64,000 bases of DNA, taken from positions 158,940 to 222,939 of the IMG/VR virus record IMGVR_UViG_3300037805_000644; one strand, 5' to 3'. Shown here piece by piece: positions 8,170-36,859 of this stretch (the first letter of the stretch is position 1; the number at the start of each line of letters is the position of its first letter). The notes beneath the pieces are model-generated. The model was not told where the DNA came from. It saw nothing but the letters and a program-made list of their open reading frames with translations, and did not search any database. The position numbers and the translations under genes were made by a program.

Positions 8170-8181
8170 GATGATTCTCCT

Positions 8182-19273: not shown

Positions 19274-20464
19274 TTACCGCAGGAACTTCTTGATGCGGAT
19301 CACCGCCTCAGGGGGGATTCGGTACTCCTTCTCCCCGGGATGGTAACTGATGCTGGGGTGGGTCATGTCCACCTCCACCGCCAGCACCCCGATATCCCCG
19401 GGGCGCTTCGCCAGATACTCCGCCGTCCTACGGATGTGTAGGAAAAAGGGGTTGAAGCGGCTTGTCGTTGTGCTGAGGTATGCCTTGTACAGCTTGACCC
19501 TGTCCCTGGGCGTGGAGAACACCTTATCGGGGTCACGGTATCGACGGGTCCGCTCCACAGGGTCTGGCTCAAACAGGTGCCACTTGCCGCCTTCAAAGCT
19601 GAAAATGAGTGCGTAGTCACGCCACTCTGTGTCAAGGAAGCTGAGGAACCCTTTTGGATTCCCCTCCCGCCGGACCCAATCAAGGATCTGAGCAGGCTTC
19701 ACCCCGCCTTTGTACACCAGTGCCAGCTCCTTATACACCCGAGCAATGCCGAAAGCAGCCTTTTGGTCATAGGTCATGGAGATGGCACGGCCCCCCGATT
19801 TGTCCTCCTGAGATCCCCCCAACCCCATCCCCAAAGCCTCATCGGGGACCGAGCTAGAGAACCCTGTGGAGTACAGCTTCCGAGCATTCGCTGAGGCGTG
19901 GTAAAGGGTCTCAACAGCCCCAGGCTTCACATCCTTGGTGCGTGTTGCCTCATACCGGGCTAGATGTACTGCCAGTGCCTTATGCAGCCCTGAGAGAGCA
20001 TCCTTGAGCCGTGCGGGGCCCGCCAGGACCTGGGGCGGCACACCCTCTTTCCACTCGGCATCCCACAGGTACCCCTCCTCCTCCGCAGCTCCTTCAAGAG
20101 CCCTGAGTGTGACCTTGCGGAAGGAAGGGACGTGCTTGGACAGGGTGTCCTGAATGCTCTGAACATCCCCAGCGTAGTCCTGCAACCAAGTGTCGTAAGG
20201 GCCGGTGCCCATGTACTCCAGGTGGCTGAGCCTGTACTGGATTTTCCGGTAAACCTCACCCTGGGGGTTGAGTTCAAACCAGAGCTGGGCCTCACCTGTC
20301 AGAGCTTCGAGGAGGTTCCTCAGCTCATAGTCAAAATCGCCAGCACCCTCGTACGCCTGTGCCCACTCTTGCAAGGCTTTGGACACTGCGGCTTGGGTCT
20401 TCTTAACGAACAGGCGTTCGCTGCGGATGGGCTGGGTAAGGGCAACCCGGTCTTGGTTCTGCAT
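19274..20464 (-). CDS. ADP-ribosyltransferase-fold protein (standalone)
   Basis: LYHAS...GF, AISMT, GEKEYRI (ExE) in ART strand order; N-terminal DRVA. Confidence 0.65.
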   Translation of the reverse strand: MQNQDRVALTQPIRSERLFVKKTQAAVSKALQEWAQAYEGAGDFDYELRNLLEALTGEAQLWFELNPQGEVYRKIQYRLSHLEYMGTGPYDTWLQDYAGDVQSIQDTLSKHVPSFRKVTLRALEGAAEEEGYLWDAEWKEGVPPQVLAGPARLKDALSGLHKALAVHLARYEATRTKDVKPGAVETLYHASANARKLYSTGFSSSVPDEALGMGLGGSQEDKSGGRAISMTYDQKAAFGIARVYKELALVYKGGVKPAQILDWVRREGNPKGFLSFLDTEWRDYALIFSFEGGKWHLFEPDPVERTRRYRDPDKVFSTPRDRVKLYKAYLSTTTSRFNPFFLHIRRTAEYLAKRPGDIGVLAVEVDMTHPSISYHPGEKEYRIPPEAVIRIKKFLR

Positions 20465-20488
20465 GTTTCACCTCACCAGGTGAGGGGT

Positions 20489-20502
20489 ATAAACAAAAAA
20501 CC
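20489..20502 (-). promoter_or_regulatory. putative late promoter motif (variant, overlapping the terminator tail)
   Basis: Minus strand GGT-ttttt-GTTTAT, 25 nt upstream of 20464. Confidence 0.45.
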
Positions 20503-20529
20503 CTGGCAGGTTGCCCTGCCAGGGGTTTT
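20495..20529 (-). terminator. intrinsic terminator after the major capsid gene
   Basis: CCCTGGCAGG-loop-CCTGCCAGGG with a T6 tail on the minus strand. Confidence 0.85.
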
Positions 20530-20573
20530 AATGGGTGTGCTCATCAGAGCCGCTGTCTAGCCTCTAAGGGCTA

Positions 20574-21446
20574 TTAGCGGGTGACGGTGAGGCGGGCCAA
20601 CCCACGGGGGTTGTAGGCGCCGATACCCAGGTTCTCGAAGACCGAGAAACCGATGGTACGTGCCTTGGGGTCGTCGGCGCTGAGCACGGTCAGCTCGGTG
20701 CGGACCGGGATCCGACCGAAGTGCTCGGGCTCGCAGCACAGGTAGACCGTGCCGACGGGAACCAGGCGGCTCACGACGATCTGGGCACCGTAGATGACGC
20801 CCATGAGACCAGTCTTGAGCAGGGTGCCCTGGGACTCGATGTCCAAGATGTCACGACCGAACTTACGGATGTCCGCGTAGTCACGGGCGTTCATGTAGAC
20901 ACGAGCAACGCGGAGGTCCCAACGCTCGATGAGAGCGAAGGCATCAGCCAGGACCGCACCCGAGATGGGGGCGATGACCGGGATGTCCGGGTTGAGCTGA
21001 CCAGGCAGCGAGTCGAAGCCCGCAGTGGCGATGGAGTCGAGCACGGCAAAGACGCGCTCATCCTCGGCAGCCTGCACCTGGGCACGGGCCAGGTCCTGAG
21101 CACGCTCAATCAGATCGAAGCGGCGCTCCTTGATCTGGGTGAGCGGGATCTCCGGGTTCGAGGCAATCTCGAACAGGGGGAAGATCACACGACGAGGCTT
21201 GGTGATGGCCAGGATGTTCTGACCTTCCTCACCAATCACGAATGCGGTCACATCCGGGTCTTTGTCGTAGATCGGCAGGGCCCCGTCAGGAAGCTGCTCG
21301 ACCAGGAAGGTCTTGCGGCCGACTGCGGCGTAGTCACGCCGGGTACGGAGGGGCTGCGTCATACTGGCAGCGAGCTTGGCCCGTCCCTGGGGGGACTGGA
21401 TCAGCTCGCCGATGAGGCGTTGCTTGACGGCGTTTGTAACGGCCAT
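20574..21446 (-). CDS. major capsid protein (HK97 fold)
   Basis: GRAKLAASMTQPL, FEIASNPEI, AEDERVF, VPVGTVYL..EPE.FG, NPRGL. From memory this resembles Bxz1/E3-type myovirus MCPs. It follows the protease, scaffold and decoration genes and ends in a strong terminator. Confidence 0.9.
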   Translation of the reverse strand: MAVTNAVKQRLIGELIQSPQGRAKLAASMTQPLRTRRDYAAVGRKTFLVEQLPDGALPIYDKDPDVTAFVIGEEGQNILAITKPRRVIFPLFEIASNPEIPLTQIKERRFDLIERAQDLARAQVQAAEDERVFAVLDSIATAGFDSLPGQLNPDIPVIAPISGAVLADAFALIERWDLRVARVYMNARDYADIRKFGRDILDIESQGTLLKTGLMGVIYGAQIVVSRLVPVGTVYLCCEPEHFGRIPVRTELTVLSADDPKARTIGFSVFENLGIGAYNPRGLARLTVTR

Positions 21447-21474
21447 GATTTTATCTCCTTGAACCCGTCAGGGA

Positions 21475-22182
21475 TCAGACGCGCTGGTCGTAGACCAGCT
21501 CGTTCTGGGTTGCGTCAGGTGCCATCTTGAGCACCGCGAGGGTGGTCACGGCGGCGGCACCGAGGCCACCTGCGTGGACGAAGCCTTCGGCACTCTCGGC
21601 GGCAACGGCATCCAACGCCTGGAGGGCGGCGGCGCCATCGACGATGCGACGGGGCTGGAGGTAACCATTGCGGCTGGCCATGAGGCGCATACCGGCGATG
21701 TACGTCAGGGCAGCACCCTGGGCATCCGCACCGATGGCGTTCTGGAGCTGCGTCTCAAACAGGCCGTTGGCATGGGTGCCCTGGCTGCTGAGGTAGGTGT
21801 TCTTACCGCTGGCGGTACCAGGGGTGTTCTCGAAGGCATTGCCGTTCACCGAGTTGATGAACACACCCAGAGCGCGGTAGCCGATCTCCTGGGCGTTGGC
21901 TGCCGCGATGGCGGTCTGCGTGGCCGCATCACCCGGGCCGCCGATCATGTTCTCGCCAGCATCGGGGCGCACAAAGGCGACCGAGCCAGAGAGGACACCG
22001 ACGAGGGTGCTGTCGACCTGCTGAGAGGTGGTGGTCCCAGCGACGGGATCCACAACGGGGTTGGCCTGGATGAACGAGTCGGCTGTCATGACGCCGGTTG
22101 CGTTCCGTACACCAATGTGCAACGGGCGCAGCGCCGAAGACGACTCGGTCCAACCACCACTGGCCTGTCCGAGAAGGGGCAT
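21475..22182 (-). CDS. putative head decoration protein
   Basis: Located between scaffold and MCP; Ala/Gly-rich; start MPLLG with SD GGAGG. Confidence 0.65.
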   Translation of the reverse strand: MPLLGQASGGWTESSSALRPLHIGVRNATGVMTADSFIQANPVVDPVAGTTTSQQVDSTLVGVLSGSVAFVRPDAGENMIGGPGDAATQTAIAAANAQEIGYRALGVFINSVNGNAFENTPGTASGKNTYLSSQGTHANGLFETQLQNAIGADAQGAALTYIAGMRLMASRNGYLQPRRIVDGAAALQALDAVAAESAEGFVHAGGLGAAAVTTLAVLKMAPDATQNELVYDQRV

Positions 22183-22302
22183 AGTGTCCTCCATTCTCCT
22201 GTTTACAGGAGGGTGAGTCTCAAAGGGCTACCCCCCAACAAGGAGGACAGCGGCAAGCTGGAAGGGCTCCCAGACCGGGGCCTTCACTGAATAGGGGGAG
22301 GG

Positions 22303-22316
22303 ATAGACGCTCTATT
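22303..22316 (-). promoter_or_regulatory. putative late promoter motif (decoration-MCP unit)
   Basis: Minus strand AAT-agagc-GTCTAT, directly after a terminator. Confidence 0.6.
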
Positions 22317-22330
22317 GAGAACCCCCCCCT

Positions 22331-22368
22331 AAAAAAGTAAAGCCCACCCGATTTCTCGGATGGGCTTT
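22331..22368 (-). terminator. intrinsic terminator after the scaffold gene
   Basis: AAAGCCCA.CCGA-GAAA-TCGG.TGGGCTTT followed by a T tract. Confidence 0.75.
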
Positions 22369-22404
22369 AGAGGCCGAAACGGGGTTAGAACCCCCGGCTG
22401 GGGG

Positions 22405-23889
22405 TCAGACGCCGAACACCTTGCTCACGTCGGGGGCGGACTTCCAGAGCTTTTCCAGCATATCCACCGAACCCGGGGCCGCCGAGGCGACGCGAGTCTG
22501 GTTCCCAAGGGCGGTGACGCCGTTGCTGGCCTGGCGGGGCTGAGGGGACAGCTCCAGCTCTTCACCGGCCGTGTGGCCAGGGAGACCGGCGGAGAAAATC
22601 TCCTCCAGCAGCTCTTCGTCGGCAGCGGAGAGGGACATGCTGCTGCCCCCACTCAGGCCCATGGGGTCATGGCCAGCCGTGTCGAACAGGTTGGCAGCCT
22701 TGTCGGCACCATCCTCGTCGTCGTCCTCGTCGCCGTCGTCAGTGGCCTTCTTGCCAGCTTCGACCGCGTCGTCGTCCTCATCCTCGTCGTCGCCTGCCTT
22801 CTTCTTCTTGAGGAAGTCGGGGAACTTGTCGTCCTTCTTGTCGTCCTTCTTGTCGTCCTTCTTGTCGTCCTTCTTGTCGCCCTTGTCCCACTGCTTCTTG
22901 AAAGCTTCGGGGACCTCACCGGCCAGGACCATCTCGCCACAGGCGCTCATCATCCCGACTTCATCGTCCATGAAGTCGTCAGCCATGCCCATCATCTCAT
23001 CCGAGGGGTCGAACATGGCGGTGATCAGCTCACCCGAGGTGACCACACCGTCAGAGTCGGTGTCCACGGCGGCGAAGAGCGCCTTCGATCCGGTCCAATC
23101 GTCGGCCAGGGCAAACCCGTCCTCACCACCACCATGGGTGGCGAAGTAGCTGGCAACTCGCCCCTGGAGGCTGGCGAAACGGGCCGAACCCTTCTTCTCG
23201 CCCTTGGCGGTGGAAGACGCCTCAGCACGCTCCTGCTCCTTCGGATCGTTCTGGCTGGCGGTGATCTGAGCCTTGAGGCCACGGATCTCGGAGGCCATGT
23301 GCTGCATCATGGACATCATGTCGTCGCCGGGGGCGCCAACATCGAGATCGTCATCCATGCCGAACATGTCGTCATCCATGCCGAACATCTCGTCGCCCAT
23401 GTCGTCCATGTCGTCGCCGAGGAACATGTCATCATCCATGGCCAGGAAGCCGCCACCGACGCGCTTGAGGCTGGCCGCAAGGTACGAGTTGGGCAGATCC
23501 ATCATGTCGAGGGCCTGCGACTCAACCAGATCCTGCGTCGCATTCTTGCCGAGCTGATGCTTGGCGAGAACGAGGCACTTGGCGGCCTTGCGCTGGATCC
23601 CAGCAGACAGCTTGGCATCCTTCTGAACCCGGGGGTTCCGCTTGTGCGCCGGGTGGTCACCATCCTCGGTGTCGTAGCCGGGAACTGCCGGGGGGTTACC
23701 CTCGGGGTACGGGCCCTGGTGGACATCCTCGGCCCAAGCCGAGGTGTCGCCCTTTTGGTACTTCTCGTAGGCAGGATCGGCCTGGTGGGCCGGGTGGCCC
23801 TGGTCTTCCTTGCCGTAACCGGGAACTGCGGGTGCGGCAGACGCCTTACGGTCCGTCTTGCTCCACGTCGTGCGAGTGCGATTGCTCAT
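22405..23889 (-). CDS. putative capsid scaffolding protein
   Basis: Start MSNRTR (SD GAGGAG); highly acidic and low-complexity; between protease and MCP; many K/R-x-A sites. Confidence 0.7.
   Translation of the reverse strand: MSNRTRTTWSKTDRKASAAPAVPGYGKEDQGHPAHQADPAYEKYQKGDTSAWAEDVHQGPYPEGNPPAVPGYDTEDGDHPAHKRNPRVQKDAKLSAGIQRKAAKCLVLAKHQLGKNATQDLVESQALDMMDLPNSYLAASLKRVGGGFLAMDDDMFLGDDMDDMGDEMFGMDDDMFGMDDDLDVGAPGDDMMSMMQHMASEIRGLKAQITASQNDPKEQERAEASSTAKGEKKGSARFASLQGRVASYFATHGGGEDGFALADDWTGSKALFAAVDTDSDGVVTSGELITAMFDPSDEMMGMADDFMDDEVGMMSACGEMVLAGEVPEAFKKQWDKGDKKDDKKDDKKDDKKDDKFPDFLKKKKAGDDEDEDDDAVEAGKKATDDGDEDDDEDGADKAANLFDTAGHDPMGLSGGSSMSLSAADEELLEEIFSAGLPGHTAGEELELSPQPRQASNGVTALGNQTRVASAAPGSVDMLEKLWKSAPDVSKVFGV
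22826..22879 (-). repeat. 12-bp tandem repeat (about 4.5 copies, DKKD)
   Basis: ttgtcgtccttc x4 plus a partial copy, in frame within the scaffold gene. Confidence 0.9.
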
Positions 23890-23920
23890 CGTGGTTCTCC
23901 TCTGGCGCTCTGCCAGGTCT

Positions 23921-25378
23921 TTACTGTTGTCCCCGAAGGGCCTGGCCCCTTCGGGACATGATAGAGCCGAGCCGCAGGAACTTCCTGGCCTCAACTGGAT
24001 TGGGCTGACGCCCAAAGGCGGAGGCGCAAGCCCCCAGAAAATCTCTGCCGGTACTGTACCGACTGGTCGGGCCTGCACTCAGTGCTGCCCGGTATAGGTC
24101 TCGATCAACACTAATGCCGGCTGCCTTATCCAGAGCCGCCACGCCCTCAACGAGGGCGATATCGGTGCTGGCAATGCGAGTGAGGACACCTACGGCGGCC
24201 TCACGCTGGATGGTGTCATTCGGGGCGGTCGAGTCGCCAACGGACTTGGACAGGTCTCGGCCCCGCATCTCATCTTTGATGCGCTTTTTCACACGCTGCT
24301 GCATGTGCTCGGTCAACTCATCCTCGGTCTCATCGAGCGGGGATTTCTTCTCCGCAGGGGGGGCTTCACCACCCTCCTCAGCAGCGGGGGCATCCCCTTC
24401 TTCATCATCCCAGCCGGCGAGGAAAGCATCACCGCCCAGGGAGGCGCCTGTGTGCGTCGCACGAGCAGCACGCTGCATCTGGTCCGCATTCCACTCCGGC
24501 GGTGGGGTGTTCAGCACCTTGGCAGCCTTGTCGAGCATGGCCTGAGTCGGCTCCAACACATTCCGCAGGACTGCTCCCGTGAACGCGGGAGTCTCTACCC
24601 AGCTCGCCTCGATGAACCGGACACCGCCCGTGGGGTCGATGCTCTCATGGCCACACAGCTCTGCAATCCGATGCTGGCGACCCAGCTCATCGAAAAATGC
24701 GGTGCCTTTGGCGTACTTGATGTGAGAACACATCTCGGTTTCGTCAGCGGCCCAGTGCCCGCAACGGGTGCAGACCGTGCCGTCCACGGTGCAACCCATG
24801 GACATCGTGGCCATCTTGCCGGACGTGATGGCCTTAACCAACTCGGTGTGCTTGCGGTCCGTGGCCACCAGAATGTCGATGTAGATCGAATCCCCGATGT
24901 CCCGAGCCACTGCATCAATGATGCGGCCCTTGGACTGCTCCTCAATCTGTACGTGCTCGACGAAATTGTGCCCACCCACAAACGTCTCAAATGCCTTGAG
25001 CAGGACGGGCCGGCTCCAGGCATCGAGGTTGTTGTTGATGAATTTGTCGCAGCTCTGGCGGATACGGTACTCGGCGTAACGGCGGTTGACCCGGAAGCCC
25101 CCCTCCATGACATGACCGAGCCTCACCCCTTGCGGAGACTCCACATCCACCGAGGCCACGATAGTGGCATGGGTGAGCAGGAAGTTCTCAGGGTTGAAGG
25201 GCTTGCCCAAGATTTGGGTAGCCCGCTCCACCAGGTTGGAGGACATCGCCACCTTGGTCGGGCGAAAGGATGAGGCAACCTTCCCGTGCTGCTTAGCGGC
25301 GGCTCGGACATTGCCCCATTGCTCTTTCCTGATGGAAGGGGTGGCAACACTGGCGTATGCATACTTCATCAAAGGCAT
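23921..25378 (-). CDS. prohead (capsid maturation) protease
   Basis: NNNLDAW, FVEH (His), KGRIIDA, MSMGC (Ser), CTRCG...CSH zinc insert, FIEASWVETPAF; upstream of scaffold and MCP. Confidence 0.8.
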   Translation of the reverse strand: MPLMKYAYASVATPSIRKEQWGNVRAAAKQHGKVASSFRPTKVAMSSNLVERATQILGKPFNPENFLLTHATIVASVDVESPQGVRLGHVMEGGFRVNRRYAEYRIRQSCDKFINNNLDAWSRPVLLKAFETFVGGHNFVEHVQIEEQSKGRIIDAVARDIGDSIYIDILVATDRKHTELVKAITSGKMATMSMGCTVDGTVCTRCGHWAADETEMCSHIKYAKGTAFFDELGRQHRIAELCGHESIDPTGGVRFIEASWVETPAFTGAVLRNVLEPTQAMLDKAAKVLNTPPPEWNADQMQRAARATHTGASLGGDAFLAGWDDEEGDAPAAEEGGEAPPAEKKSPLDETEDELTEHMQQRVKKRIKDEMRGRDLSKSVGDSTAPNDTIQREAAVGVLTRIASTDIALVEGVAALDKAAGISVDRDLYRAALSAGPTSRYSTGRDFLGACASAFGRQPNPVEARKFLRLGSIMSRRGQALRGQQ

Positions 25379-25380
25379 GA

Positions 25381-26001
25381 TTACATCCCCCCCATCATGC
25401 GCTGGCGGGCCAGCCGGATGCCGGAGAACGGCTGAGGGGCAGGCCCCGCAGCATCCGCATCGAAGTAATCAGGGTGACCCATGATATCGCACTTCTTCAC
25501 CAGGAACATGCACTCAGGGCACCCGAGTAGCTTCTCCCGGGCTCCATCACGCATCTTGTAAGCAGCAGGGCGGAGACACCCCATCTTGCATTTGGGGCAG
25601 GTGTAACTGCCCGTATCAAGCTCTGCTTTTGTAGCCCTGTAATTGCGGTTCTTGGCCGCCCAATACAGAGACTTTTTGACAAAAGCCTGGGCAACTCGAA
25701 GAGAGCTGGCTGCCTTCGGCCCACCGGGGACAGACACGGTTCCGGCCCCACCGGGGACGTTGTCGTGCTCTGCCTTTGGCGGGATAAGATCTTTGGGTTC
25801 GTAACGCCCCAGCTCTTCAACTGGGTAACGCTCACTCCCGTGAGGCCACTCAACATCGACCATGCCGATAGCAGGGTAAACCGCCACGACACGACCGCTG
25901 TTTTCGTAGTTGCCGCTCATGAAAGGATACACCAGGTCACCGACCCCAAACTCTGAGGCCCGCTGCTGAAAATCCACGTATGCCGAGCGGTCTTTACTCA
26001 C
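25381..26001 (-). CDS. SH3-like plus zinc-ribbon head-associated protein
   Basis: VGDLV...GRVVAV...VDVEW; tag RVAQAFVKKS; CPKC...CPEC. Confidence 0.6.
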   Translation of the reverse strand: MSKDRSAYVDFQQRASEFGVGDLVYPFMSGNYENSGRVVAVYPAIGMVDVEWPHGSERYPVEELGRYEPKDLIPPKAEHDNVPGGAGTVSVPGGPKAASSLRVAQAFVKKSLYWAAKNRNYRATKAELDTGSYTCPKCKMGCLRPAAYKMRDGAREKLLGCPECMFLVKKCDIMGHPDYFDADAAGPAPQPFSGIRLARQRMMGGM

Positions 26002-26015
26002 GTCAGTTCTCCGAA

Positions 26016-26594
26016 TCAGGCGTACAGGTTGAAGCCGTGGGCCTTCTTGCCGGACTCTTTCTCGTCGCCCTCATCCTCATCCTCATCATCCTCAGCAGAC
26101 TTGACGATCTGGGAGGCAAGGCGTAGAGCTTTGGCAACCCGGGCCTCCTCGGCGAAGCTGAGGTTGGTGCTCTGGAGAGCAGCCACGAGGCTCAGGAAGC
26201 TGGCTTGGACGCCGGCCCGTGCGGGCTGCTCCGCCATGCTCGGAGCAGCAAGGTTGCCACCCTCCACTTCCTCGCGAAGCTCCCGGTTCTCCTGCTGGGA
26301 GAACTGGCCGCCCATGTAACCGGACTCGTCGCCGTCACCCTCAAGAGGACCGCCATCCTCCCGGCCGATCTCCGAGGGATCGAAGTCAGCGTTCTTGACC
26401 TCACCCCCCTCGTCACGCTCAAGGCCAGCGGTGACCTCAATGCGGTCCGAGAGGAGGTCGCAGCGGTGGGCGAAGTCAGCAGCGATTTTCTCGGGGATCC
26501 CGAGTGCTGCGTGCTCTGCCTGAATGAGGGTGGCAACGCGATCCAAAGCGGTAGAAGCCTGGAAAGCGCCCTTCTTGGTGATACGGTTGGGCAT
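26016..26594 (-). CDS. putative internal head / core protein
   Basis: Acidic; DRVATL, KNA, RVAKALRLA, KSA and KKA sites; own late motif upstream. Confidence 0.55.
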   Translation of the reverse strand: MPNRITKKGAFQASTALDRVATLIQAEHAALGIPEKIAADFAHRCDLLSDRIEVTAGLERDEGGEVKNADFDPSEIGREDGGPLEGDGDESGYMGGQFSQQENRELREEVEGGNLAAPSMAEQPARAGVQASFLSLVAALQSTNLSFAEEARVAKALRLASQIVKSAEDDEDEDEGDEKESGKKAHGFNLYA

Positions 26595-26675
26595 GTCTTC
26601 GTTCTCCTGTTCCGTCAGGGCCTCAGCGGGATGACAGCTCGGGCGTTGAATGCCCTTCGCTGATATGGGCTGGGT

Positions 26676-26689
26676 ATAGACGAACGATT
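26676..26689 (-). promoter_or_regulatory. putative late promoter motif
   Basis: Minus strand AAT-cgttc-GTCTAT, about 82 nt upstream of 26594. Confidence 0.6.
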
Positions 26690-26732
26690 GAAAATCGGTG
26701 GTTGTAACCCGGTTTACCAGGTCGGTTAAAGT

Positions 26733-29700
26733 TCACGACTTCTTACCTTTACCCTTACCGCCCGGCCCCACCTTTCTGCCGTCGTTGTGGGCCTCAACCT
26801 TCTGGTCAAGGACATCCACCTCGCCTGTCTCACAGACGTGGCGCACACGGGCGACCTGGGGGTTCAGCTTGTCCGGCGCCTTACCTGTCACCTTCTCGGC
26901 GGCGGCGTATGTAGCGCACATGTCCGTCACCTGGAGAGAGTCTGCACCGCCCTTGCATTTCTCCAGCTCTGCCTGAGTGGTTGCCTTGGCAATGCAGCCT
27001 GCCAGCTTGTCGACCGCGTCCTTGAGGGTGCGGTCATTGCCTTTCTCGGCACGTACACGCTCCGCCAAATCCTCAGGCTTTGTGGTGGGGGCTCCCTTTT
27101 CGGGCTCGTCTCCACCACCGCCAAGAGAGTTGAGGAAACCTTGCATGGTGGTCATGTCGTTGACTGCCAGCATCTTGAGCAGATCTCGGGCGAAAGCTCT
27201 CTGCTCTCCGCCCATCAGGTTGTCCTCCCCCTCATCCAGGAGGGCGGCCCCGATGGGCCCATATGCGGTGTCCTTGCTGGCGACCACCTCTACCAGATCG
27301 GCGTCCGGTAGCGAGTCCAGCGCCTCACGCACCCTAGAGCGTCCCTCAGGCCCGTAAATCTCAGACCCACCCCGGAGTAGCAGACTATGGTCCCCCTGGG
27401 CTGCTAGGGCCTGTGAGAGCACCTGGAAGCTCTTGGAGACCTCATCGGCACCGGGGAGTTGGCGACCTTGCACTGAGGCAGCTAGAACCATCCCAGACTT
27501 GATGGCGTCCAGCTCAATGAACTCGTCGGACTCTGGGTCCAGGTTGCTCAACTGATCTTCAAGCTTCCGGGCAGCGACATCCATCAGCTCTGTGCCAGCC
27601 TTGAGGAACTGCCGGAAAGCATCCTCAGCGCGAGATTGGAGCTGATCAGCGGACTTGGTGCTGTCGTTGATTGGCACCCCACCCACCAAAGAGGGATCGG
27701 ACACCACCTGCCGGGCGAACACGTACTCGGCCAGCATCTCTGCCTGAGCCTCTAGGCTCCTGTCCCCTAGGCCCTTGAGATCCTGCTTGAGTGCCTTGTT
27801 GGCGGCCTTGAACGCCTCGGCCCGGAGCCCGTCAGCAGTGAACCGACCTTCCCGAAGCTGGCTCATATGGGCAGTGTATGCCTCCGCCAGAGCAGCGGCT
27901 CCCTTCTCATCCAAATCTCGAATCAGTCGATCTGCGTCCCGAGGGAGATCCTTGGTGACCTTGCTGAAATCGTCGAGCTGACGCTCATGTTTGGCCCGCT
28001 GTTTCTCCCGAGCCTTGCCTCGGTCAGCTTTTTCCTGCTCGGCAGCGGCCTCAGGGTCGGGCTCCTCTTCCTCAGACTTGCGGTTGCCCTCGGCCATCCG
28101 CTTGGCGGCGGGCTCATCCGTGGCAGAGGTGGGCTGCTTGGCGCCCGGAGGCCAGACCCCCCACCCGTTTCGGGTTTGCCAGTAATCGCCCTCTTTCTTG
28201 TCAGCGTCTGGGGCGACCCGAGCTGCGATCCTGGTGGCCGTGGCACTGCCCCACCCGCCGACCCGCACGGCTGCGTCCTGGGCCTTCAAGTGCGTGTGGA
28301 CCCCCTTGAGGATGATCTGCTTGTTCCTCGGGGTCAGGTACGGCTCGATGTCTGGCCACTTGGAGTCCTTCAACGCCTCCCTGACGGCCATATTGAAACC
28401 CATGCCGTAACCCATGAACTCTTGAACGGAGTCCCCCACCTGGGTCACCACATCGCGCATCAGCGCCCGGACCTCTGCGGGGTGGTTGTGGTGGTGCCGC
28501 TTCAAATCTTCCATTGACCCGGAGAGATCACCCGCCGAACCCTTGCCAGACCAAACGTCTGCCGCGTGGGTCAACTCATGGGCGAGGAGACGGTACAGCT
28601 CATCCTCGATGATCCGAGTGGGACGTTGCTCGAACGACCGAAGGTAAGGGTTGACGAACACCCTCATCAGCGGACCCTCCCCACGGCGCTTGAGGAAGCC
28701 CCCGTGAAGCAATTCGTTGTTGAACGGGTCAGGGTGCCTGCGTGGGGATCCCGTCAACAGGATCTCCACATCAATCTCATTGCCCAGGACGTTGGTGATG
28801 TACAGATACTCCTGAGCAACCACCTGACCTGGCCTGGGGAGCCCCCGCTGGCGGAGTTGTAGGGCCAGCTTCTTGGAGAGGGCCTTGATCTCCCGAGTGG
28901 GCAACCGGATGGGACGGGCCGCCTGTTTGGTGGAGGCGAGATCTCGGCCCTTGGGGGCGTCGTCAGGGTTGACCACACGCACGACTTCAAGGGCACGAGG
29001 GTCGTAGGTCTGGTTGCCCACTGTGGACTGCCAACCCTCCATCCAGAAACCCACAGCGCCCTTGGCCTGCACCTCACCAGCCCAGCGGTCCACCGCCTGC
29101 ACCAACGACTCGCCCCGCTTCATCTTGCGGGGCGACCTTTTCAGATACTTGAAGCCCGGCTTAACCCGAAGCTCCAGCAACGCCCCGTGCGGGAAATAGA
29201 TCGAGGCGTCTTCTGGCTTGTCCGCCGTGGAGATCGACGGCACGCCGTGCATGAACGTGGACACATCTCCAGAGCCTCGGGGGAGCTGGAGCCCTTTCCG
29301 CAGGATCGAAGGCACCCTGTCCCACGGCGTCGCGTGGTACTGCACCCTCGGCATCTTGGCCTGTTTGGCAGCGGCCGTGCGCTCGTTGGGCAGGCAGGCA
29401 CCCACCAAAGACATCAGGAGGCTGTCTCCGGCAGCCTCGATAGCAGCGACCTTCTTGAAGTTCAGGCTGAGGTCTGAATCCTGGTCGACCCCACCACCCG
29501 CCATATCGGGGTCATCCACCTTCATCTTGTTCCGGCGGAGGTCCTGACGAGGAGGCTTCTTGGAAGGCTTCTTGCGGTTCATCCGCTCAACCTCTTCCTT
29601 CTCTTTCTCGCCCTTGTCCTTGGTGGCGGTGACCTGCTTACCCAAGCGGGCCGCCATATCCGCATACTTGAGGGGTGCCCTCTGCTTGAGGCGCCGGGGC

Positions 29701-32700
29701 TCCTCTACGAATGCCCTGAAACACTCGGCGAAATCCTCGCTGGCGTTGGTCTCCGCGTAAGCCGACACGTAAGGTTCGATGCCGTAAACCTTGAAATAAG
29801 CGTCAACACCCCGGGTCTTCTCGTCAAAAGCATGACCCAGCTCGTGGGTGAGGTACGACCGGAGAATAGGGATTGAGGTCTTACGACCTGTGCCCACCAC
29901 CAGGGCCATCACCCCCCGGGACTCCCAGGAGGCGTCCTCCGACCCTCGGCCGACACCAAACCGCACCTTCCTGACCTCTGAGGCCCACAGCTTAGCTGAG
30001 TGGCCCTTGAGAGAACCTGCGGCCCTTGTCCAGGCGTGGATATCGAGGCTCCCCTCGGAGCTGTCCAGATCCAAACCTCGGGTTTGCCAACCCTTGCCGG
30101 TGGCACTTTCAAATGCAGCCAGGGCCTCATAGTGGGTCCGCAGCTTGCGCTCCTGCTTGCGGGGCGTCCTGGGGGTTTTCACCCCCTGGATGAGGCCCAA
30201 CTCCTCAGCCGGCACCTCTGCCCTGCCCAGCCACCCCACCAACTCGACTGTGGTCATCGGCTCCTCACCCATGACCGGGTCACTCATGCGGCGGATCTTC
30301 CGCTGGAGGAGACGCACGGTCGGGCTCGAAGAACCCCACCCTGTCGGGTCGGCCAAGATGGCTTTGATGATAGCCTTGAGGTAAGGCACCGTGACCGGAG
30401 ACCCGATCCCGGCCTGCTTTGTCAGGTCCTTCAACCCGGAACAGTAAGTGGGCACCGCATAAAGGATCTGGTCGTTGTCCTGGAGCTTCACAGGAGCCCT
30501 AGACAACAGGCGCACACCTTTTGCGAAGCTGACCACCTGGGGGTTGCGGAGCACCACATCTTGCTTCCAGACAATTTCCTCGGCGTACCCATACTGGGGC
30601 AGGGTCGCTGTCTGGAACACGATCCCCACCAGCTCATCCCCGGCATCCCACCTCGTGTGGTTGGTCTGGACTCGGGGGCGGTGCTGCCCCCAAACCAGAG
30701 AGACACCACTTACGGCGTCGATCCCCATTTTCTTGTAGGGGGGCCTCATCAGGAGCTTGCCTCCTTGGATGATCTGAACGGCCCTGCTGCGGAGGGTGAA
30801 ATGGATGAACCTGTCTTTCTTGATGTCCATCAAGAAAAACCTATCCCCATACTGCTCTGCCTCCCCACACTCCAACTGCCTCAGGGGGTTGCCTTGATCC
30901 GCGTACTTCTTAGCAGGGGTTGCCTCAAACACCTCCCCATAAGGGGTGAGGATCGAACCTCTCCGCCCTCGGCGAGGGTACACGAGGCCCAGCACAGCCA
31001 GCATCCTATGGCCCTCACCTAGGTGGACAGGGTTCGGGTGTGCCGCTTGCAGCTCCAGCAACAGATTATGCATGTGCCGGGTCAGGCGCGGGGCCACCCT
31101 GGCGGTGAGCAATCCCGCCTGGGGCCCCTTAGGGTTTACCGAAGCCACACGATCACCAATCATCTTGAGGCCCTGAGGGTCGGGGCTGCTGCCGATTTTC
31201 CCCAACCACCGAGAGGCCACCCGGTGGGCCGCACCTTTCACGGGGCCATTGTCGTACACGAGCCCTAGGTGCTTCGGCTGGGCCGAAAGGCGTAGGATGA
31301 CCTCACTCTCGTGTCCGAAAGCACGGCTGTTCAGGGGGGTGTCCGGCACGCCAGGGTGTAGGAACACGTCTCCTCGCTTGACCTCGAAAGCATGTACCTG
31401 TCCCATCATCGGGTGTTCCGTGGTCAGGGAGGCCCCGCCCATCTTGGCGGCCGACTGACCGGGCTTCATGCGGCGGTACATCACCGCAGAGGGCCCGTGA
31501 GCCTTGGTGAAAGCAGCGGACACCGCCTGGTCGAAAGCTCGTTTCAGCGTGGGGTCCATCCCTGCATAGCGGCGGAAAGCCTCGGCCTTCCCCTTAGGGT
31601 CATTATAAAACACCCAGTCGGACAAGCCAGGCCACAGCTCTTCAAGGGCATCGTCCTGGGCACCGCTGGCAGCTTTGGGCACGGGGCCACCCCACACGGC
31701 ATCACCCACCGAGAAAAAGCGACGCTTCAAGGACACCCACACACCATCGGCAGCCATAGGGCTGGTCATGCCCCTGTGCCAGCAATGCTCAGGGACAAGG
31801 GCGCACCCTTGGCTGGCGGCTTTCTGCACCGCCTGGTCATAGAGCGCCTTACCCCAACCCTCACCACGGTGGTCCTCATCCACGTAAGAGCTGGTGACCA
31901 TGTACAGGCCCTTGAGGGAGGGCACCCGGGCACGCAGGTCCTCGACATCCGCTGAGCAATGCTTGGCCCTCTCGAAGGGCAGGCGCTCCATCTTCACCCC
32001 ACCAAGGATGCCTCGCTCATTCACCTCTTCCCCGTAGTCGCTGTACTCCACCACGCGCCCACGGATGAGGAAAAGAAACCCGCCGGCAGAGGACTTCACC
32101 TCGATCTTGGGCATCGCGGCCTTCTTGCTCTGGCTCAGGCTGTCGGACACCTCACCCTTGGAAAGGTACTTGTCTGCCAGACCAGGCACCAGGTACTGAC
32201 TCTTGAGGGTCGCAGGCTCATGGCCTACTGCCGCTGCGGACTCCTTGAGGGCCTGCTCAAACTCTTTCTTGAGCTTTTCCCCACGCTCTTTCTTGTCTGA
32301 GGGCAGCTTCCCGCCCTTGCTGCGGATCGCCTTGAGGCGGCTCTGCATCTCTGAGTTGGCGTGGAAGCCCCGCATGTCCTTGGCGGTGATGCCGAAAGGC
32401 TTGAGGTACGTGTTCACGTCAGAGGCGCCCACGGAACCGGTGAGGCTGTCGTTTGCACCCTTGCCCTCCTTAGCCGCCTTGAGGGCAGAGACCAGGCCCG
32501 CGTCCGTCACGACCTTGTCGTGGGACACGCCTGACTTGCCGACGTACTTGAGGGTCGCCTTGCCTCCTGAGAGGGTCAGGTGCTTGACCTTCCACCCGGT
32601 GACCCCGAAATGCCCGTCCTTGGCAGAGGAGTCGTTACCGATCCGCTCATAGGTCTCATCCATCAGCCCGACCACCAGGGCCTTGAGCCGGGTGCCTTCG

Positions 32701-33773
32701 TCCTTGGACTTGAGATCCTTCTTGACCTGGCTGCGGAGCTTGCCGATGGAGCCACGTAGTTTCTCGACCCGCTTGGCTTTCTCCCGGTTCCTGTGCTGGA
32801 CCTGACCCTCGGTGTACTCGTAAACGGTCGTGGTCCCCTTGCCGTCGGCCTTAGGGACTTCTTTTTTCTTCTGGAACTTGGCAGCGATTCGTGAAATGGC
32901 GCTCATGCTTGCTTCCTTGGCGTCTGCCTTACGGACGAAATTGATGGGGCAGGCTGGGGCCTCTGACGCGTTAGGCTCGTAGTAACCAGCGGCGGCCCCG
33001 AGGATCTTACCCCGATGACCAGCCTGCCGGAACCGGGCGGCCACTGCCTTGATCGTGGTGCCCGTCGTCACGATGTCGTCGATGATGAGCACGTCCTCGT
33101 TGGGGTCGATCCCTGCCACCGCAATAGACTGAATATGATCGTCCAGGGTGACTCCGGGGAGACCCCTCTGCCGGCGCATCCGGGAGGATTCCACGGGGGC
33201 GACTCGGGATGCCGCCGTTTCGGCGCGGGTCCCCACACCTTGGGCCACCAGGGCCTCTGCAAACCTCATCAGAGGGGGGCTTGTGCCCTTGGAGCGAGGG
33301 GCAGGTACCACCACCCCCCGAAACCCCCGCAATGCAGGGTGACTGCTCAGATGGGCTGCACACTTCCGGGCTGCTTTCGGGTCCCCATCCTTGAGTTTCT
33401 GGATCAGGTCTTGAACGCCATCGCAGTCCGGGCTGATGCCTCGGTGGTGCGTGCGGGACAGATACACAAAAGCAGCATACACCGGGACTGACCCCGCCCC
33501 TCGGGTGCGCATCTGAGATGAGACCGTCTGTACCGCTGCGGCTTTCTCAACCTGCTCCAGCTTGTCATAGTAATGAGGGTCCTCCGTCAGGTGGTCCACG
33601 GCCACCTCCCGGGCAATATCCTTGTTGTCCGTGTGCTCCATCTCGACCTTGATCCCTTTCGCCAACTGAGGAGGGTCGAAATCAGAAGGCACGCGATCAT
33701 CGCCGATCCCACCGGGCATCTGGTCCCGGTACCTGGCGGCCACCCTATCCTCTGGGCTCTTAGGACCTTTCAT
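26733..33773 (-). CDS. 2346-aa polyvalent protein: DUF5661, PRTase, topoisomerase IB, GNAT, ART (R-S-E), ART (H-type), zincin, ART (H-type), zincin, helical C-terminal region
   Basis: GIKVEMEHT..DHLTEDPHYY; VLIIDDIVTTGTT; ERIGN/GKSG/KDMR/GHEP..KSQY; VDEDHRGEGWGKALY; MYRR/ASLTT/HESEVIL; FIHFT..IIQGGKL..EEIVW; HELGH..EDFAE; YHAT..SILRKGL; HELTH..EVRA. Confidence 0.85.
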   Translation of the reverse strand: MKGPKSPEDRVAARYRDQMPGGIGDDRVPSDFDPPQLAKGIKVEMEHTDNKDIAREVAVDHLTEDPHYYDKLEQVEKAAAVQTVSSQMRTRGAGSVPVYAAFVYLSRTHHRGISPDCDGVQDLIQKLKDGDPKAARKCAAHLSSHPALRGFRGVVVPAPRSKGTSPPLMRFAEALVAQGVGTRAETAASRVAPVESSRMRRQRGLPGVTLDDHIQSIAVAGIDPNEDVLIIDDIVTTGTTIKAVAARFRQAGHRGKILGAAAGYYEPNASEAPACPINFVRKADAKEASMSAISRIAAKFQKKKEVPKADGKGTTTVYEYTEGQVQHRNREKAKRVEKLRGSIGKLRSQVKKDLKSKDEGTRLKALVVGLMDETYERIGNDSSAKDGHFGVTGWKVKHLTLSGGKATLKYVGKSGVSHDKVVTDAGLVSALKAAKEGKGANDSLTGSVGASDVNTYLKPFGITAKDMRGFHANSEMQSRLKAIRSKGGKLPSDKKERGEKLKKEFEQALKESAAAVGHEPATLKSQYLVPGLADKYLSKGEVSDSLSQSKKAAMPKIEVKSSAGGFLFLIRGRVVEYSDYGEEVNERGILGGVKMERLPFERAKHCSADVEDLRARVPSLKGLYMVTSSYVDEDHRGEGWGKALYDQAVQKAASQGCALVPEHCWHRGMTSPMAADGVWVSLKRRFFSVGDAVWGGPVPKAASGAQDDALEELWPGLSDWVFYNDPKGKAEAFRRYAGMDPTLKRAFDQAVSAAFTKAHGPSAVMYRRMKPGQSAAKMGGASLTTEHPMMGQVHAFEVKRGDVFLHPGVPDTPLNSRAFGHESEVILRLSAQPKHLGLVYDNGPVKGAAHRVASRWLGKIGSSPDPQGLKMIGDRVASVNPKGPQAGLLTARVAPRLTRHMHNLLLELQAAHPNPVHLGEGHRMLAVLGLVYPRRGRRGSILTPYGEVFEATPAKKYADQGNPLRQLECGEAEQYGDRFFLMDIKKDRFIHFTLRSRAVQIIQGGKLLMRPPYKKMGIDAVSGVSLVWGQHRPRVQTNHTRWDAGDELVGIVFQTATLPQYGYAEEIVWKQDVVLRNPQVVSFAKGVRLLSRAPVKLQDNDQILYAVPTYCSGLKDLTKQAGIGSPVTVPYLKAIIKAILADPTGWGSSSPTVRLLQRKIRRMSDPVMGEEPMTTVELVGWLGRAEVPAEELGLIQGVKTPRTPRKQERKLRTHYEALAAFESATGKGWQTRGLDLDSSEGSLDIHAWTRAAGSLKGHSAKLWASEVRKVRFGVGRGSEDASWESRGVMALVVGTGRKTSIPILRSYLTHELGHAFDEKTRGVDAYFKVYGIEPYVSAYAETNASEDFAECFRAFVEEPRRLKQRAPLKYADMAARLGKQVTATKDKGEKEKEEVERMNRKKPSKKPPRQDLRRNKMKVDDPDMAGGGVDQDSDLSLNFKKVAAIEAAGDSLLMSLVGACLPNERTAAAKQAKMPRVQYHATPWDRVPSILRKGLQLPRGSGDVSTFMHGVPSISTADKPEDASIYFPHGALLELRVKPGFKYLKRSPRKMKRGESLVQAVDRWAGEVQAKGAVGFWMEGWQSTVGNQTYDPRALEVVRVVNPDDAPKGRDLASTKQAARPIRLPTREIKALSKKLALQLRQRGLPRPGQVVAQEYLYITNVLGNEIDVEILLTGSPRRHPDPFNNELLHGGFLKRRGEGPLMRVFVNPYLRSFEQRPTRIIEDELYRLLAHELTHAADVWSGKGSAGDLSGSMEDLKRHHHNHPAEVRALMRDVVTQVGDSVQEFMGYGMGFNMAVREALKDSKWPDIEPYLTPRNKQIILKGVHTHLKAQDAAVRVGGWGSATATRIAARVAPDADKKEGDYWQTRNGWGVWPPGAKQPTSATDEPAAKRMAEGNRKSEEEEPDPEAAAEQEKADRGKAREKQRAKHERQLDDFSKVTKDLPRDADRLIRDLDEKGAAALAEAYTAHMSQLREGRFTADGLRAEAFKAANKALKQDLKGLGDRSLEAQAEMLAEYVFARQVVSDPSLVGGVPINDSTKSADQLQSRAEDAFRQFLKAGTELMDVAARKLEDQLSNLDPESDEFIELDAIKSGMVLAASVQGRQLPGADEVSKSFQVLSQALAAQGDHSLLLRGGSEIYGPEGRSRVREALDSLPDADLVEVVASKDTAYGPIGAALLDEGEDNLMGGEQRAFARDLLKMLAVNDMTTMQGFLNSLGGGGDEPEKGAPTTKPEDLAERVRAEKGNDRTLKDAVDKLAGCIAKATTQAELEKCKGGADSLQVTDMCATYAAAEKVTGKAPDKLNPQVARVRHVCETGEVDVLDQKVEAHNDGRKVGPGGKGKGKKS

Positions 33774-36700
33774 ACTGGCTCCACCTTGAGGATCTTGACT
33801 TTGCGGGGATCGAACAGAGCCACCTCAGGGACACCGTCGACAAGGCCAGAGCCGTGGAAAACCACGCAATCATAGCCGTTCTTCCGGGCCTTGCGGGCCT
33901 GCTCTTTGCGGGCGGTGACCAAGACGTTCTGTGCCTTCACCATTACGGTGTACACCTTGGGTCGGTATTTCGCAGAGTCGAGGCCCAAGGTGTCCAGGGA
34001 GTCATAAACGTACTCGGGCAACCCAGTGCCCTGGCTGAACAGGGAGCCCCCAGCGGGGGGCGGCTCAACCTTACTGCCCAGAATGTATCCTGCAATGTCG
34101 TTCAGATCGTTGGGGTCCATGTCGCCCATGAGAGCGTCGATGTCCTCTCCGGTCGTGAGGTTGTTGGTGGCCATCCAGTGGTCCCACCCTTTCCCGTGCC
34201 CCAAGTCGAACATGCTTTGGAGTAGGCTCCCCCCGCCCTTGTTCAGCCTCGCCAGCTCAGCAATGATCGAGACGGGGAACCCAATGTTCCTGTTTGCATC
34301 GGCATACCGGACAGCGACCCGCTTTGAGGGGGTCAGGAAAATGCCCTTGCCGTAAAACTTGGACACCAGGTCATCCCGGGATTGCGCCATGTCGAAGGCC
34401 CGGAACGACCGGGTGGTGCCGTGGTAAAGGATCGTGCCCGCCCCCGACACAAGCCCTTCCAAGCCTTCCTGTTTGAGATCGATATTGGCAACACGGGTCA
34501 GGTACTGACTCGCCACACGGGCGGCGGCCTTTTTCCTGGCGCGGCCCTCGTCAAAGCGAAGCTTGAACAGCCTCACATCTTTCTTCTTGGTCTTGCCGTC
34601 CTTGTCAGGCTCGGTCTCGACCACCACCATCGGGTCACCCTTGGGTCCCTTCTTGAAATCGACGATGTAACCCTTGCTGTTGAGATATTTCCCGGTAAGA
34701 ACGGGGTCACCGAGGTTCAACGTGAACGACTTGGCTACCCGGGCTGCCGCCACTTTCTCATCACGGGACAGCCTCATGAGGGGCTTCCCATAAAGACCCG
34801 ACAGGCTCAGGGCTCGCTGCATCCGAAACTTCCCCATTTCGGACAGGCGTCCGGGAGCTGCCATGAAGGCAACGAAAGACTCCGCGAAATCCTCCCTCTC
34901 GTTGGTCTTGGCATACTCAGTCGGAACCTGGAGGGCTTCGAGAGCCTGGGCCACGGCACTATCATCTTGGGCGTAAGCAGCCACCTGCTCCTTGGTGAGT
35001 GTGGGGTGGGTGAAAGACTCCACCCCTGTTGCACCCAATGTGCTCTTCACCTGGCGAAACACTCGGTCCATTCTTCTCTGATAATCACTTTCCCCCGGGG
35101 AAGTCCCATAATCTTCGGACAGGAGTCTCACAGGATCGGATAGGAGTCGGTGCATGCGCACCCCACGATCTCGGTTCCAGCGGAGTTGTTTCGGCGTAAC
35201 AAAAGGGCCTCCTGCTAGAGGCTCATGCAGCCAGGCGTGGAACTTCATCCTGTCGAGCCCCCGAAGGCGGATACCCCGCAGGTTACCCTCGGATTCCTCC
35301 AACAGGCCCCAGAACCTCATACGTTCCGGGAGGGAGACCCCTCGGATGTCCTTTTCGGTCTGTGCATCGACCTTCTCTGCCTCCTGGACAGGAATCCACC
35401 CGGAGTCCCACTCCTTGCGGGCTTCGGGGTGCATGAGGGTCAGGTGAAAGTGATGACCCACCTCATGGAGAAAGATCTCGTGGATCCACTCCCGGAGCAT
35501 CCGCCCATCCACCCTTCCCGCAGCCGCAGTGAGGAGCTGGATACGCCCCCGGTCGCCATACCACCCGTGAGCAGTCTCTCCCTCAGAGCTGTGTCGGATG
35601 ATGATGGTGTGTACCGTCTCGTGGAGCAGAGGGGTTACACCCCTCTGCTTGAACAGGCCCACCACATAATCCACACCGGATAGGAACTTTCGGATCGTGG
35701 GTTCGGGAAGGCGGTCGGGGTTCTGAACGGAAAAACCCTGGTATTTGAAACGCCGCACTCCCGCCTGCCTGGCAAAGCTATTGAGCTGATCAGCATAAGA
35801 ATCAAGGGCAGTGAGGAGCACCTGAACCCGGTAAGTCAGGGTCACCCCCTCTCCCACCACAAGGCTGGTGTGGAATTTGACAGACTTGAAAAGGTCTCCT
35901 GCCGCATCCCGAACACGCCTACGGATGCTGTAATCGATGGCATCCCGTCCAAGGGATCGAAGAACCCAGCCGCCAAAAGGCCGCCCAAAATGCAGGGGGT
36001 GTGCTCCAGGCTGGCTGAGGGCGTGGGGGAACCCATCCTCTTGCAGTTTCTCCCGCAGCTTTCCCTCAGGGACGCGGCTCAGGCCCTTGAACCGTGCGTG
36101 AATCTTACTGAAAGCAACCAGCTCTTTGGAGATCTCTTTCCAATCAGCATCCGCCTGTGCCGGACCTTTCCAGACATAGCGAAGAGCCTCCCGTGCCACC
36201 TTTGCCGATCCAGCCTTGAGCTTGTGGGTCTTGGGCATCCCCCAGATCTCGATCTCGTCGAAAGTCCAGCTCCCCGTGGGGGTGACGCCACCGAACTCAG
36301 CCTCCAGGCCATCCAGGTAATCCAGGGTGGTGTGGGGGCGGTAAACCGTATAGCTGTCCCCTACCTCAATGCCCAAGTCTTGTACGGCGCTCTTGAGGCG
36401 GTCCCGCAGCTCTGCCATCCGGTGGCTGAACCGGATAGGCAGGATGGCCACACGACGCTCTTCGGCCGGGTGGGTGAAGTAATCGAGACCTTCAAGGTTC
36501 GCAGTGACCGGCTCACGCAGCTCCTCCGACACCACCCGCTGACAGGTGGAGACGAACTCAGCCTCCCTGCCCTTGACGTTCCCGACATAGAGCAGCGTGA
36601 TGTGGGGCGGCGACTTATCGTTGCCGGATTGCTTCTTGGGAAACTGATCGGCCAGGTGGCGGGGGAGAGGGATGAACAGACCTGTCCACTCGGTGGAGTC

Positions 36701-36808: not shown

Positions 36809-36845
36809 CGGGTGTGCTCCTACAGCCTATACCCTCAACGGGGGT

Positions 36846-36859
36846 ATAGGCTGATCACA
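36846..36859 (-). promoter_or_regulatory. putative late promoter motif within an inverted repeat
   Basis: Minus strand TGT-gatca-GCCTAT, about 38 nt upstream of 36808; part of the CAGCCTATACCC/GGGTATAGGCTG inverted repeat (36823-36853). Confidence 0.55.

Follow-up and report, generated by a model that had tools for sequence, protein, structure and literature searches.

We have identified what is probably a huge-phage head module in which two portal-adjacent polyvalent proteins and one stand-alone gene carry unrelated NAD+-binding domains of the ADP-ribosyltransferase (ART) fold, with products that are packaged and cleaved. The window analyzed is the last 64,000 nucleotides of the 222,939-bp IMG/VR record IMGVR_UViG_3300037805_000644, and all coordinates refer to it unless otherwise stated. 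The polyvalent proteins are P0003 (1012 aa; 33770..36808), encoded directly after the portal gene, and P0002 (2346 aa; 26733..33773); the stand-alone gene encodes P0001 (396 aa; 19274-20464). A preliminary description of the window had placed these three open reading frames (ORFs) at the same positions, all on the minus strand, and had assigned five ARTs to them. We are confident that at least three ART folds occur in these polyvalent-type head-module proteins, since membership of the ART superfamily is supported for the C-terminus of P0003 and for two segments of P0002, designated D1 and D3. The C-terminal domain of P0001 is a probable fourth, and for a third segment of P0002, D2, the hints are all sub-threshold, so that a count of five is not established.

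Head-packaged ARTs are thought to be a general means by which large phages seize the host at injection and, to our knowledge, T4 Alt is the only one to have been characterized in detail. The protein-modifying domain found most often in polyvalent proteins is the ART, of which a single protein may have up to 12 copies (PMC5512222). Packaging and injection have been predicted for polyvalent proteins, and it has been proposed that their zincins (MPTase domains) carry out the processing (PMC5512222). Of the ARTs encoded by phages, about 44% occur in head-packaging contexts (PMC9503650), and ARTs are found in more than 40% of jumbo phages, with at least 10 in Bacillus phage G (PMC5512222, PMC9503650, PMC7824862).

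The C-terminal domain of P0003 (residues 785-1012; 33773..34456, minus strand) is, judged by its sequence, a member of a known ART family, ART-PolyVal (PF18760). The Pfam model matched the isolated domain at 40.4 bits (E 6e-10; gathering score 31.2) and the whole protein at 35.8 bits. A six-frame search of the 223-kb record scored 31.1 bits, or 31.9 bits with neighbouring stretches, and gave no other match in the record. The signature of ART-PolyVal is a His on strand 1, a Tyr on strand 2 and an Asp on strand 5 (PMC5512222). The motifs previously reported for P0003 are present (YHGT at residue 795, GIFLT at 822), and the His and Asp correspond to H796 of YHGT and D1000 of LFDP, with F824 in place of the strand-2 Tyr. 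When this domain was aligned with seven relatives, the His and the Asp were present, and several relatives likewise had Phe for the Tyr.

D1 (P0002 residues 699-850; 31224..31679, minus strand) is supported as a stripped-down R-S-ExE ART by its predicted fold together with a conserved R-S-ExE triad. An AlphaFold2 model generated from an eight-sequence alignment (predicted local distance difference test (pLDDT) score 85.3; predicted template modelling score 0.79) consists of three N-terminal helices followed by six strands. The top Foldseek matches of this model were ExoS, ExoT, a Listeria ART-ARH toxin, C2-I, C3larvin and Tre1, at E values of 0.05-1.7. When the model was structurally aligned with 48,161 representative chains, about 39 of the 50 best were ART or ART-like, as were about 46 of 50 when the Foldseek candidates were re-examined. 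The ART matches include ExoS, CPILE-a, C2-I, VIP2, C3, Scabin, Certhrax, Tne2, diphtheria and pertussis toxins, PARP10 and ParT. The motifs MYRR (765), SLTT (782) and ESE (822) fall into place on the model: R767/R768 lie at the end of strand 1 (model residues 64-70), S782 is on strand 2 (84-86), and E822-x-E824 opens strand 5 (126-129) after a long loop. All of these residues are invariant in the eight D1 sequences. Sequence comparison linked D1 to no family, Pfam giving no significant match and a PDB sequence search chance matches only, and a language-model look-up with a D1 relative returned nothing. PF03496 (ADPrib_exo_Tox, Alt/VIP2) matched neither D1 nor anything in the whole record at E <= 1, and PF15633 likewise had no match in the record. 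On its model, D1 would work like the Alt/VIP2 family, yet it is not a member by sequence; that family is said not to occur in polyvalent proteins (Iyer et al. 2017, PMC5512222). The helix-then-sheet layout had also raised the possibility of a barnase-like RNase, which was dropped after the fold search returned ARTs.

D3 (P0002 residues 1467-1614; 28932..29375, minus strand) is related to ART-PolyVal and to the NAD lobe of Tpt1/KptA, and profile-profile and bridging matches support, with moderate strength, its placement in the ART superfamily. Its key residues are H1480, in the YHAT motif at 1479, S1515-T1516, Y1526 and Q1588, with ILRKGL at 1490. Compared by hhalign with an eight-sequence ART-PolyVal alignment built from related huge phages, D3 gave a local P of 5.8e-5 and, in global mode, a probability of 84.5% (P 7.8e-7). 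A 24-sequence D3 profile found Tpt1 structures in the PDB at E 0.015. PF01885 (Tpt1/KptA) matched 8 of the 24 members below threshold (best E 0.056), one member had an ART-PolyVal Pfam match, and PF01885 had no match in the record at E <= 10. In a set of 111 sequences, a Tpt1-like bridging ORF (L029) of a 543-kb relative matched members of the D3 family with E values from 1.6e-5 to 4e-3. The best profile match of D3 is ART-PolyVal rather than Tpt1, and a Tpt1 proper would have two lobes and an above-threshold score, whereas only the C-lobe region of Tpt1 matches D3. Near the position of the strand-5 acid the invariant residue is Q1588. Without a conserved catalytic acid, classical transferase activity is doubtful, and D3 may be inactive or may perform different chemistry.

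The C-terminal domain of P0001 (residues 178-396; 19277..19933, minus strand) is probably, on the strength of its model, the fourth ART-fold domain. It follows an N-terminal helical bundle (residues 1-177; 19934..20464, minus strand), delimited by AlphaFold2 secondary structure, which has an RVA motif at residues 6-8 and found only generic helical-bundle structural matches. Eight relatives were recovered, several of them on 407-kb and 543-kb viral contigs, and H189, S229, T231, R336, E378 and E380 are invariant in the nine sequences. The motifs YHAS (188), ISMT (228) and EKE (378) were confirmed, and the mix of a His with an S..ExE core ascribed to this gene in the preliminary description holds; H189, S229, T231, E378 and E380 lie on strand 1, strand 2 and the start of a late strand of the model (full-length pLDDT 73.8; C-domain blocks mostly about 75-92). 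This combination of His, S-x-T and E-x-E fits neither classical triad. An Atlas shape search with residues 180-396 returned one match of low root mean square deviation (3.6 A over 101 residues; template modelling score 0.41, normalized by the match), in a cluster of which 18% of members carry a PARP family. In a language-model search the Arr-ms rifampin ART was the only named family, at 0.89, below the 0.9 line. When the full-length protein was compared with the PDB, a wide PDB set and BFVD, the lists were filled by the helical bundle and were uninformative on the C-domain. P0001 is separated from the major capsid gene by a terminator-like hairpin (20501..20524, minus strand; 10 bp, 8 of them GC, with a T tail), in agreement with its earlier placement right after the capsid gene terminator. 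The terminator parts P0001 from the capsid operon, and the gene may thus be regulated differently.

D2 (P0002 residues 959-1119; 30417..30899, minus strand) belongs to a large unannotated family and, from its sequence, may be an H-type ART, possibly the fifth ART domain. Residues 695-1625 of P0002 were used as a HMMER query against 1.84 billion representative proteins, which gave 592 hits at E <= 0.001. Family sizes were taken from the best 150 hits plus earlier finds: more than 90 of these best hits belong to D2, with about 48 members for the zincin, about 27 for D3 and about 6 for D1. Many D2 members are stand-alone proteins of 145-230 aa, so this segment occurs both as a domain and as a protein of its own. 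H991 (in HFT, at 991), T993, S1025, E1066 (in EE, at 1065-1066), W1069 and D1072 are invariant, with H991, S1025 and E1066 at ART-like spacing. Tox-ART-HYD1 was the top family for D2, matching 5 of 62 members below threshold (best E 0.011). D2 also has in common with D3 a strand-1/helix-1 motif, H-x-T plus helix (hhalign P 8.5e-4 over 18 columns). Nothing was found for D2 in a PDB sequence search, in PHROGs or by hhalign against ART-PolyVal, and no Pfam match was significant. The HFT and YHAT segments had been singled out as the weakest of the five; the YHAT segment is now better supported than the stand-alone gene by its profile-profile and bridging matches. In a 297-kb relative (L006/L018; G003 231496-234207), D2 and ART-PolyVal occur together in one ORF of more than 1150 aa, in which an SRVAAR motif comes after the ART.

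In all five cases the key residues are fully or almost fully conserved among independent metagenomic relatives, and the motifs therefore exceed chance strings. The strand-1 motif is not diagnostic by itself: the pattern [YFLIV]-H-[AGF]-[ST] occurs six times in the roughly 17,750 aa of window ORFs, and one occurrence, a YHGT, lies inside a calcineurin-like phosphoesterase (62338-63336). A sixth ART at this position was considered and rejected, as the ORF is a metallophosphoesterase. Several observations weigh against an array of ARTs. P0003 has Phe where the family description has Tyr. D2 and the P0001 C-domain match no ART significantly by sequence or profile, the latter in Pfam, the PDB sequence search and hhalign against ART families. 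D3 has no conserved strand-5 acid, the D1591 position being D, N, E or Q across the 24 members, and no N-terminal lobe bearing the catalytic Arg-His of Tpt1. Pairwise BLASTP detected no similarity among the five segments, and hhalign among their families detected nothing except the D3/ART-PolyVal match and the short D3-D2 motif. For D1, D2, D3 and P0001, scanning of the separate domains and of their relatives with Pfam gave no significant match, and PHROGs gave nothing useful. Foldseek on predicted structures, proposed in the preliminary description as a check, found the D1 model to be ART-like and found no ART match for full-length P0001 at E < 0.06. Rough estimates for the fold alone range from near certainty, through two high and nearly equal values and one moderately favorable, down to an even chance; their product makes it improbable that all five segments are ART folds.

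The alternative readings of the five segments differ mainly in how much is made of the weaker cases. It is distinctly unlikely that every one of the five is a catalytically active ART with a separate target. Residues of strand 1, strand 2 and a late strand are conserved at ART-like spacing in all five, the fold is supported for three, and related huge phages also have many ARTs; this reading is opposed by the sub-threshold hints for D2, by the weak fold and language-model leads for the P0001 C-domain, by the Gln and variable Asp/Asn of D3 at the expected catalytic acid, and by the combined fold estimate, below which activity must fall further. A far stronger competitor, to which we give nearly even odds, holds that D2, the P0001 C-domain or both have some other fold and resemble ARTs by coincidence, D2 being for example a small hydrolase using H991, S1025 and D1072/E1066. 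It draws on the lack of a significant ART link for either domain by Pfam, PDB sequence search or hhalign, and on the YHGT of the unrelated phosphoesterase. Against this stand the five D2 members that match one ART family, which is also the top family, the H-x-T and helix motif common to D2 and D3, and the fact that an ART family was the only sensible named match of P0001 in both shape and language-model searches. D1, in addition, is ART-like by fold and also has no hhalign signal to the others, so that lack of such a signal says little. Rather unlikely is a division of labor in which only some domains are host-modifying ARTs and D3, perhaps with others, belongs to an RNA-end repair or NAD-handling toolkit, or is a non-catalytic NAD- or ADP-ribose-binding domain. 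The nearest named relatives of D3 are Tpt1/KptA, a 2H domain is present in the neighbouring P0003, an RlaP nucleotidyltransferase (59627-60817) and the Metallophos ORF lie in the window, and 2H, KptA and RlaP have been described together as phage RNA-repair parts (PMC9503650, PMC7824862). D3 nevertheless has no Tpt1 N-terminal lobe, stays below the Pfam threshold in a record devoid of PF01885 matches and is closest by profile to ART-PolyVal. The window enzymes concerned were identified at E 9.5e-24 (RlaP) and E 1.7e-10 (calcineurin-like phosphoesterase), the 2H/LigT phosphoesterase domain of P0003 lies at 36245-36619, and these could act together with a Tpt1-like D3 in RNA repair. At least three ART folds in the head module remains our preferred account of the domains, and several targets, as had been suggested earlier, are plausible because the domains fall in different ART clades.

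By their sequences, P0003 and P0002 are polyvalent proteins, since their segments recur in reordered form in other proteins, which matches the published definition (PMC5512222). P0003 comprises a 2H/LigT phosphoesterase (residues 64-188), a zincin (HEVGH at 448, REDFAE at 638), a small conserved domain (686-761) and the C-terminal ART. P0002 begins with DUF5661, a phosphoribosyltransferase (PRTase), a topoisomerase IB, a GNAT domain, D1 and D2, and continues with a zincin (HELGH at 1310, SEDFAE at 1345), a basic linker, D3, HELTH at 1732 and a C-terminal module (1844-2331). DUF5661 and topoisomerase IB (E 5.5e-26) are clear Pfam matches; those to phosphoribosyltransferase, GNAT and, around HELGH 1310, zincin families are weak and sub-threshold, and the second HExxH at 1732 was read from the sequence. 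The limits of the three ART candidates in P0002 were set from BLAST alignments of relatives. BLAST against a few long relatives placed P0002 segments in a different order in other metagenomic proteins of 1300-2600 aa. Both proteins thus combine disparate domains that recur in other architectures and have packaging and head genes as neighbours. The topoisomerase IB catalytic core (P0002 residues 326-525; 32199-32798) is 68% identical in two other giant metagenomic proteins, and a DNA-relaxing topoisomerase IB may be injected with the genome. The Lys/Arg-rich linker (residues 1378-1464; 29382-29642) is kept across shuffled polyvalent proteins, as is the C-terminal module of about 490 aa (26781-28244); both recur at 22-60% identity in P0008, P0009, P0011 and P0014. 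Neither matched any family, and together they may form a capsid anchor. Profile scans detected no MuF or other known head-anchor domain. The stop codon of P0003 and the start codon of P0002 overlap by four nucleotides (ATGA; 33770-33773), an arrangement suggestive of translational coupling between the two genes.

The short motif R-[VI]-A is enriched about five-fold in the head module and is a candidate maturation-cleavage or capsid-targeting signal, as judged from its distribution. In the ten genes of 19274-38819 it occurs 23 times against 4.9 expected (Poisson p 3e-9), and it is rare elsewhere in the window. It is usually followed by S, A, Q, K or P, and often then by R and an aromatic residue. 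The portal, P0001, P0002 and small head proteins have RVA-type motifs close to their N-termini, and others occur where domains meet in P0002 (residues 295, 851/875/892 and 1848/1852) and in P0003 (690, 764 and 772). Among 150 metagenomic relatives, R[VI]A has an overall frequency of 1.63 per 1000 aa, 2.5-fold over expectation, and one of 0.24 inside D1-D3; RVASRY/F/W is found just upstream of D2 in unrelated proteins. The form R-[VI]-A-[SAQKP] was also observed at 44862-45560 of the window and in the relatives P0034, P0052, P0067, P0090, P0005, P0006, L001, L002 and L018.

We infer packaging of these proteins from the position between portal and capsid protein, from two relatives (L012 and L011) in which the portal likewise directly precedes D1-led or D2-containing polyvalent ORFs, and from the published behavior of polyvalent proteins and T4 Alt (PMC5512222, PMC9503650). 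It is hypothesized that the polyvalent proteins and P0001 are produced late, together with the head proteins, and enter the capsid, and that they are cut into single domains at the RVA-type junctions, with either the head maturation protease or the zincin domains that they contain as the cutting enzyme. The released domains would then be injected with the phage DNA, and the ART domains would use up host NAD+ in modifying various molecules of the host or the phage. Proteins would be the most likely targets of the R-S-ExE and ART-PolyVal domains; the Tpt1-like D3 might act on phosphate ends of RNA or DNA, or might only bind NAD+. The ARTs would work beside the 2H phosphoesterase, topoisomerase IB, GNAT and PRTase delivered with them. 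The opposing possibility, that these are unpackaged, late cytoplasmic enzymes whose genes happen to be situated within the head cluster, has little probability in our estimation. In its favor, P0001 lies behind a terminator, and a known head anchor was not detected in the profile scans. It is countered by a post-portal position kept in at least two related contigs, by an architecture typical of polyvalent proteins, and by the junction motif, which is also present at the portal N-terminus and in small head-module proteins. Packaging followed by cleavage stays our favored reading. In its boldest form, the module would supply the capsid with five or more NAD+-consuming domains of differing mechanism, freed at a conserved RVA-S/A-R-aromatic signal and including two unrecognized ART clades, namely a minimal R-S-ExE domain without inter-strand helices and a His + S-x-T + E-x-E hybrid that might stand between the H-Y-E and R-S-E branches as an intermediate; taken as a whole, this is an improbable conjunction.

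The record has a CheckV completeness of 42% and is thus a fragment of a very large phage, with a GC content of about 61%. On the minus strand, the gene order is large terminase (39445-41397), portal (36855..38819; phrog_16240, E 1.4e-25), P0003, P0002, two small ORFs, head maturation protease (485 aa; 23921..25378; phrog_18299, E 4.6e-14), two ORFs, major head protein (20574..21446; phrog_2522, E 1.4e-50), the hairpin and P0001. The terminase, portal, protease and major head protein surrounding the polyvalent ORFs were all identified with PHROGs, which bears out the head-module setting proposed for these genes. As called from the longest ORFs, the gene for a 557-aa protein (22405-24078) overlaps that of the protease by 158 nucleotides, and its real start is probably further downstream. 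No DNA or protein match for these sequences was found among GenBank phages, and no source gave a name for the relatives of these proteins. At least four ART-PolyVal ORFs, with four matches scoring above threshold, occur in a 543-kb relative (G002) together with a true Tpt1 and with ORFs of Tpt1-like and HYD1-like type. The ORFs concerned are L026 (G002 8094-8282), L029 (G002 116129-116401), L016, L019, L022 and L023. The Tpt1-like L029 is lobe-only in this complete relative, and the HYD1-like ORF has the same layout as P0001, a helical N-terminus and a small C-terminal ART.

The general idea of multiple head-associated ARTs in polyvalent proteins and jumbo phages is already published, and the locus is less new in this respect than the preliminary description had implied. 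The gain is therefore limited to new families and a testable processing signal and is not a new concept. New, as far as sequence comparison can tell, are four ART-like families without significant match to curated models, one of which (D1) is, according to its model, an R-S-E type domain inside a polyvalent protein, and the apparent enrichment of an RVA-type motif at domain junctions. The locus offers compact, separable domains from these four families, one of which has hundreds of metagenomic members, and their possible targets include protein, RNA or DNA ends, and NAD+ itself. Should the junction motif serve as a signal for cleavage or packaging, it would allow one to predict from sequence alone which proteins this phage group packages.

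Like the polyvalent proteins with ART-PolyVal / Tox-ART-HYD2 domains described previously from phages and conjugative elements (Iyer et al. 2017, PMC5512222), P0003 and P0002 are giant multi-enzyme polypeptides beside packaging and head genes, with ART, GNAT, zincin and nucleotide-metabolism domains that recur in shuffled order, and P0003 has a bona fide ART-PolyVal domain. They differ in that a significant match to a curated family is missing for four of the five ART-like segments, in that no MuF or N4-RNAP anchor was detected, and in the presence of a topoisomerase IB domain. Tpt1/KptA resembles D3 in the H-x-T strand, the I-L-x-x-G-L helix and the following Ser-containing strand of the NAD lobe, whereas D3 is one lobe short, scores below the Pfam threshold and is nearer to ART-PolyVal by profile. 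The R-S-E toxins C3, VIP2, iota and ExoS are the best structural neighbours of D1, with which they share an N-terminal helical region, a strand-1 Arg, a strand-2 Ser-x-Thr, a loop and a strand-5 Glu-x-Glu. The sequence cleaved by T4 gp21 is Leu/Ile-x-Glu. The parallel drawn earlier with T4 Alt is a reasonable one, given gene position, synteny with relatives and the junction motif: D1 is likewise a head-associated R-S-E type ART, likely to undergo maturation cleavage and predicted to modify host proteins at injection. In contrast to T4 Alt, to which PF03496 provided no sequence link, D1 is a domain of about 150 aa embedded in a 2346-aa protein, its packaging is predicted, and the candidate RVA-type cleavage motif is unlike the gp21 site. 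Multi-ART jumbo phages such as Bacillus phage G (PMC9503650) also have several unrelated ARTs per genome, many of them in head-gene contexts, whereas the ARTs of this window are concentrated in three adjacent genes of the head module.

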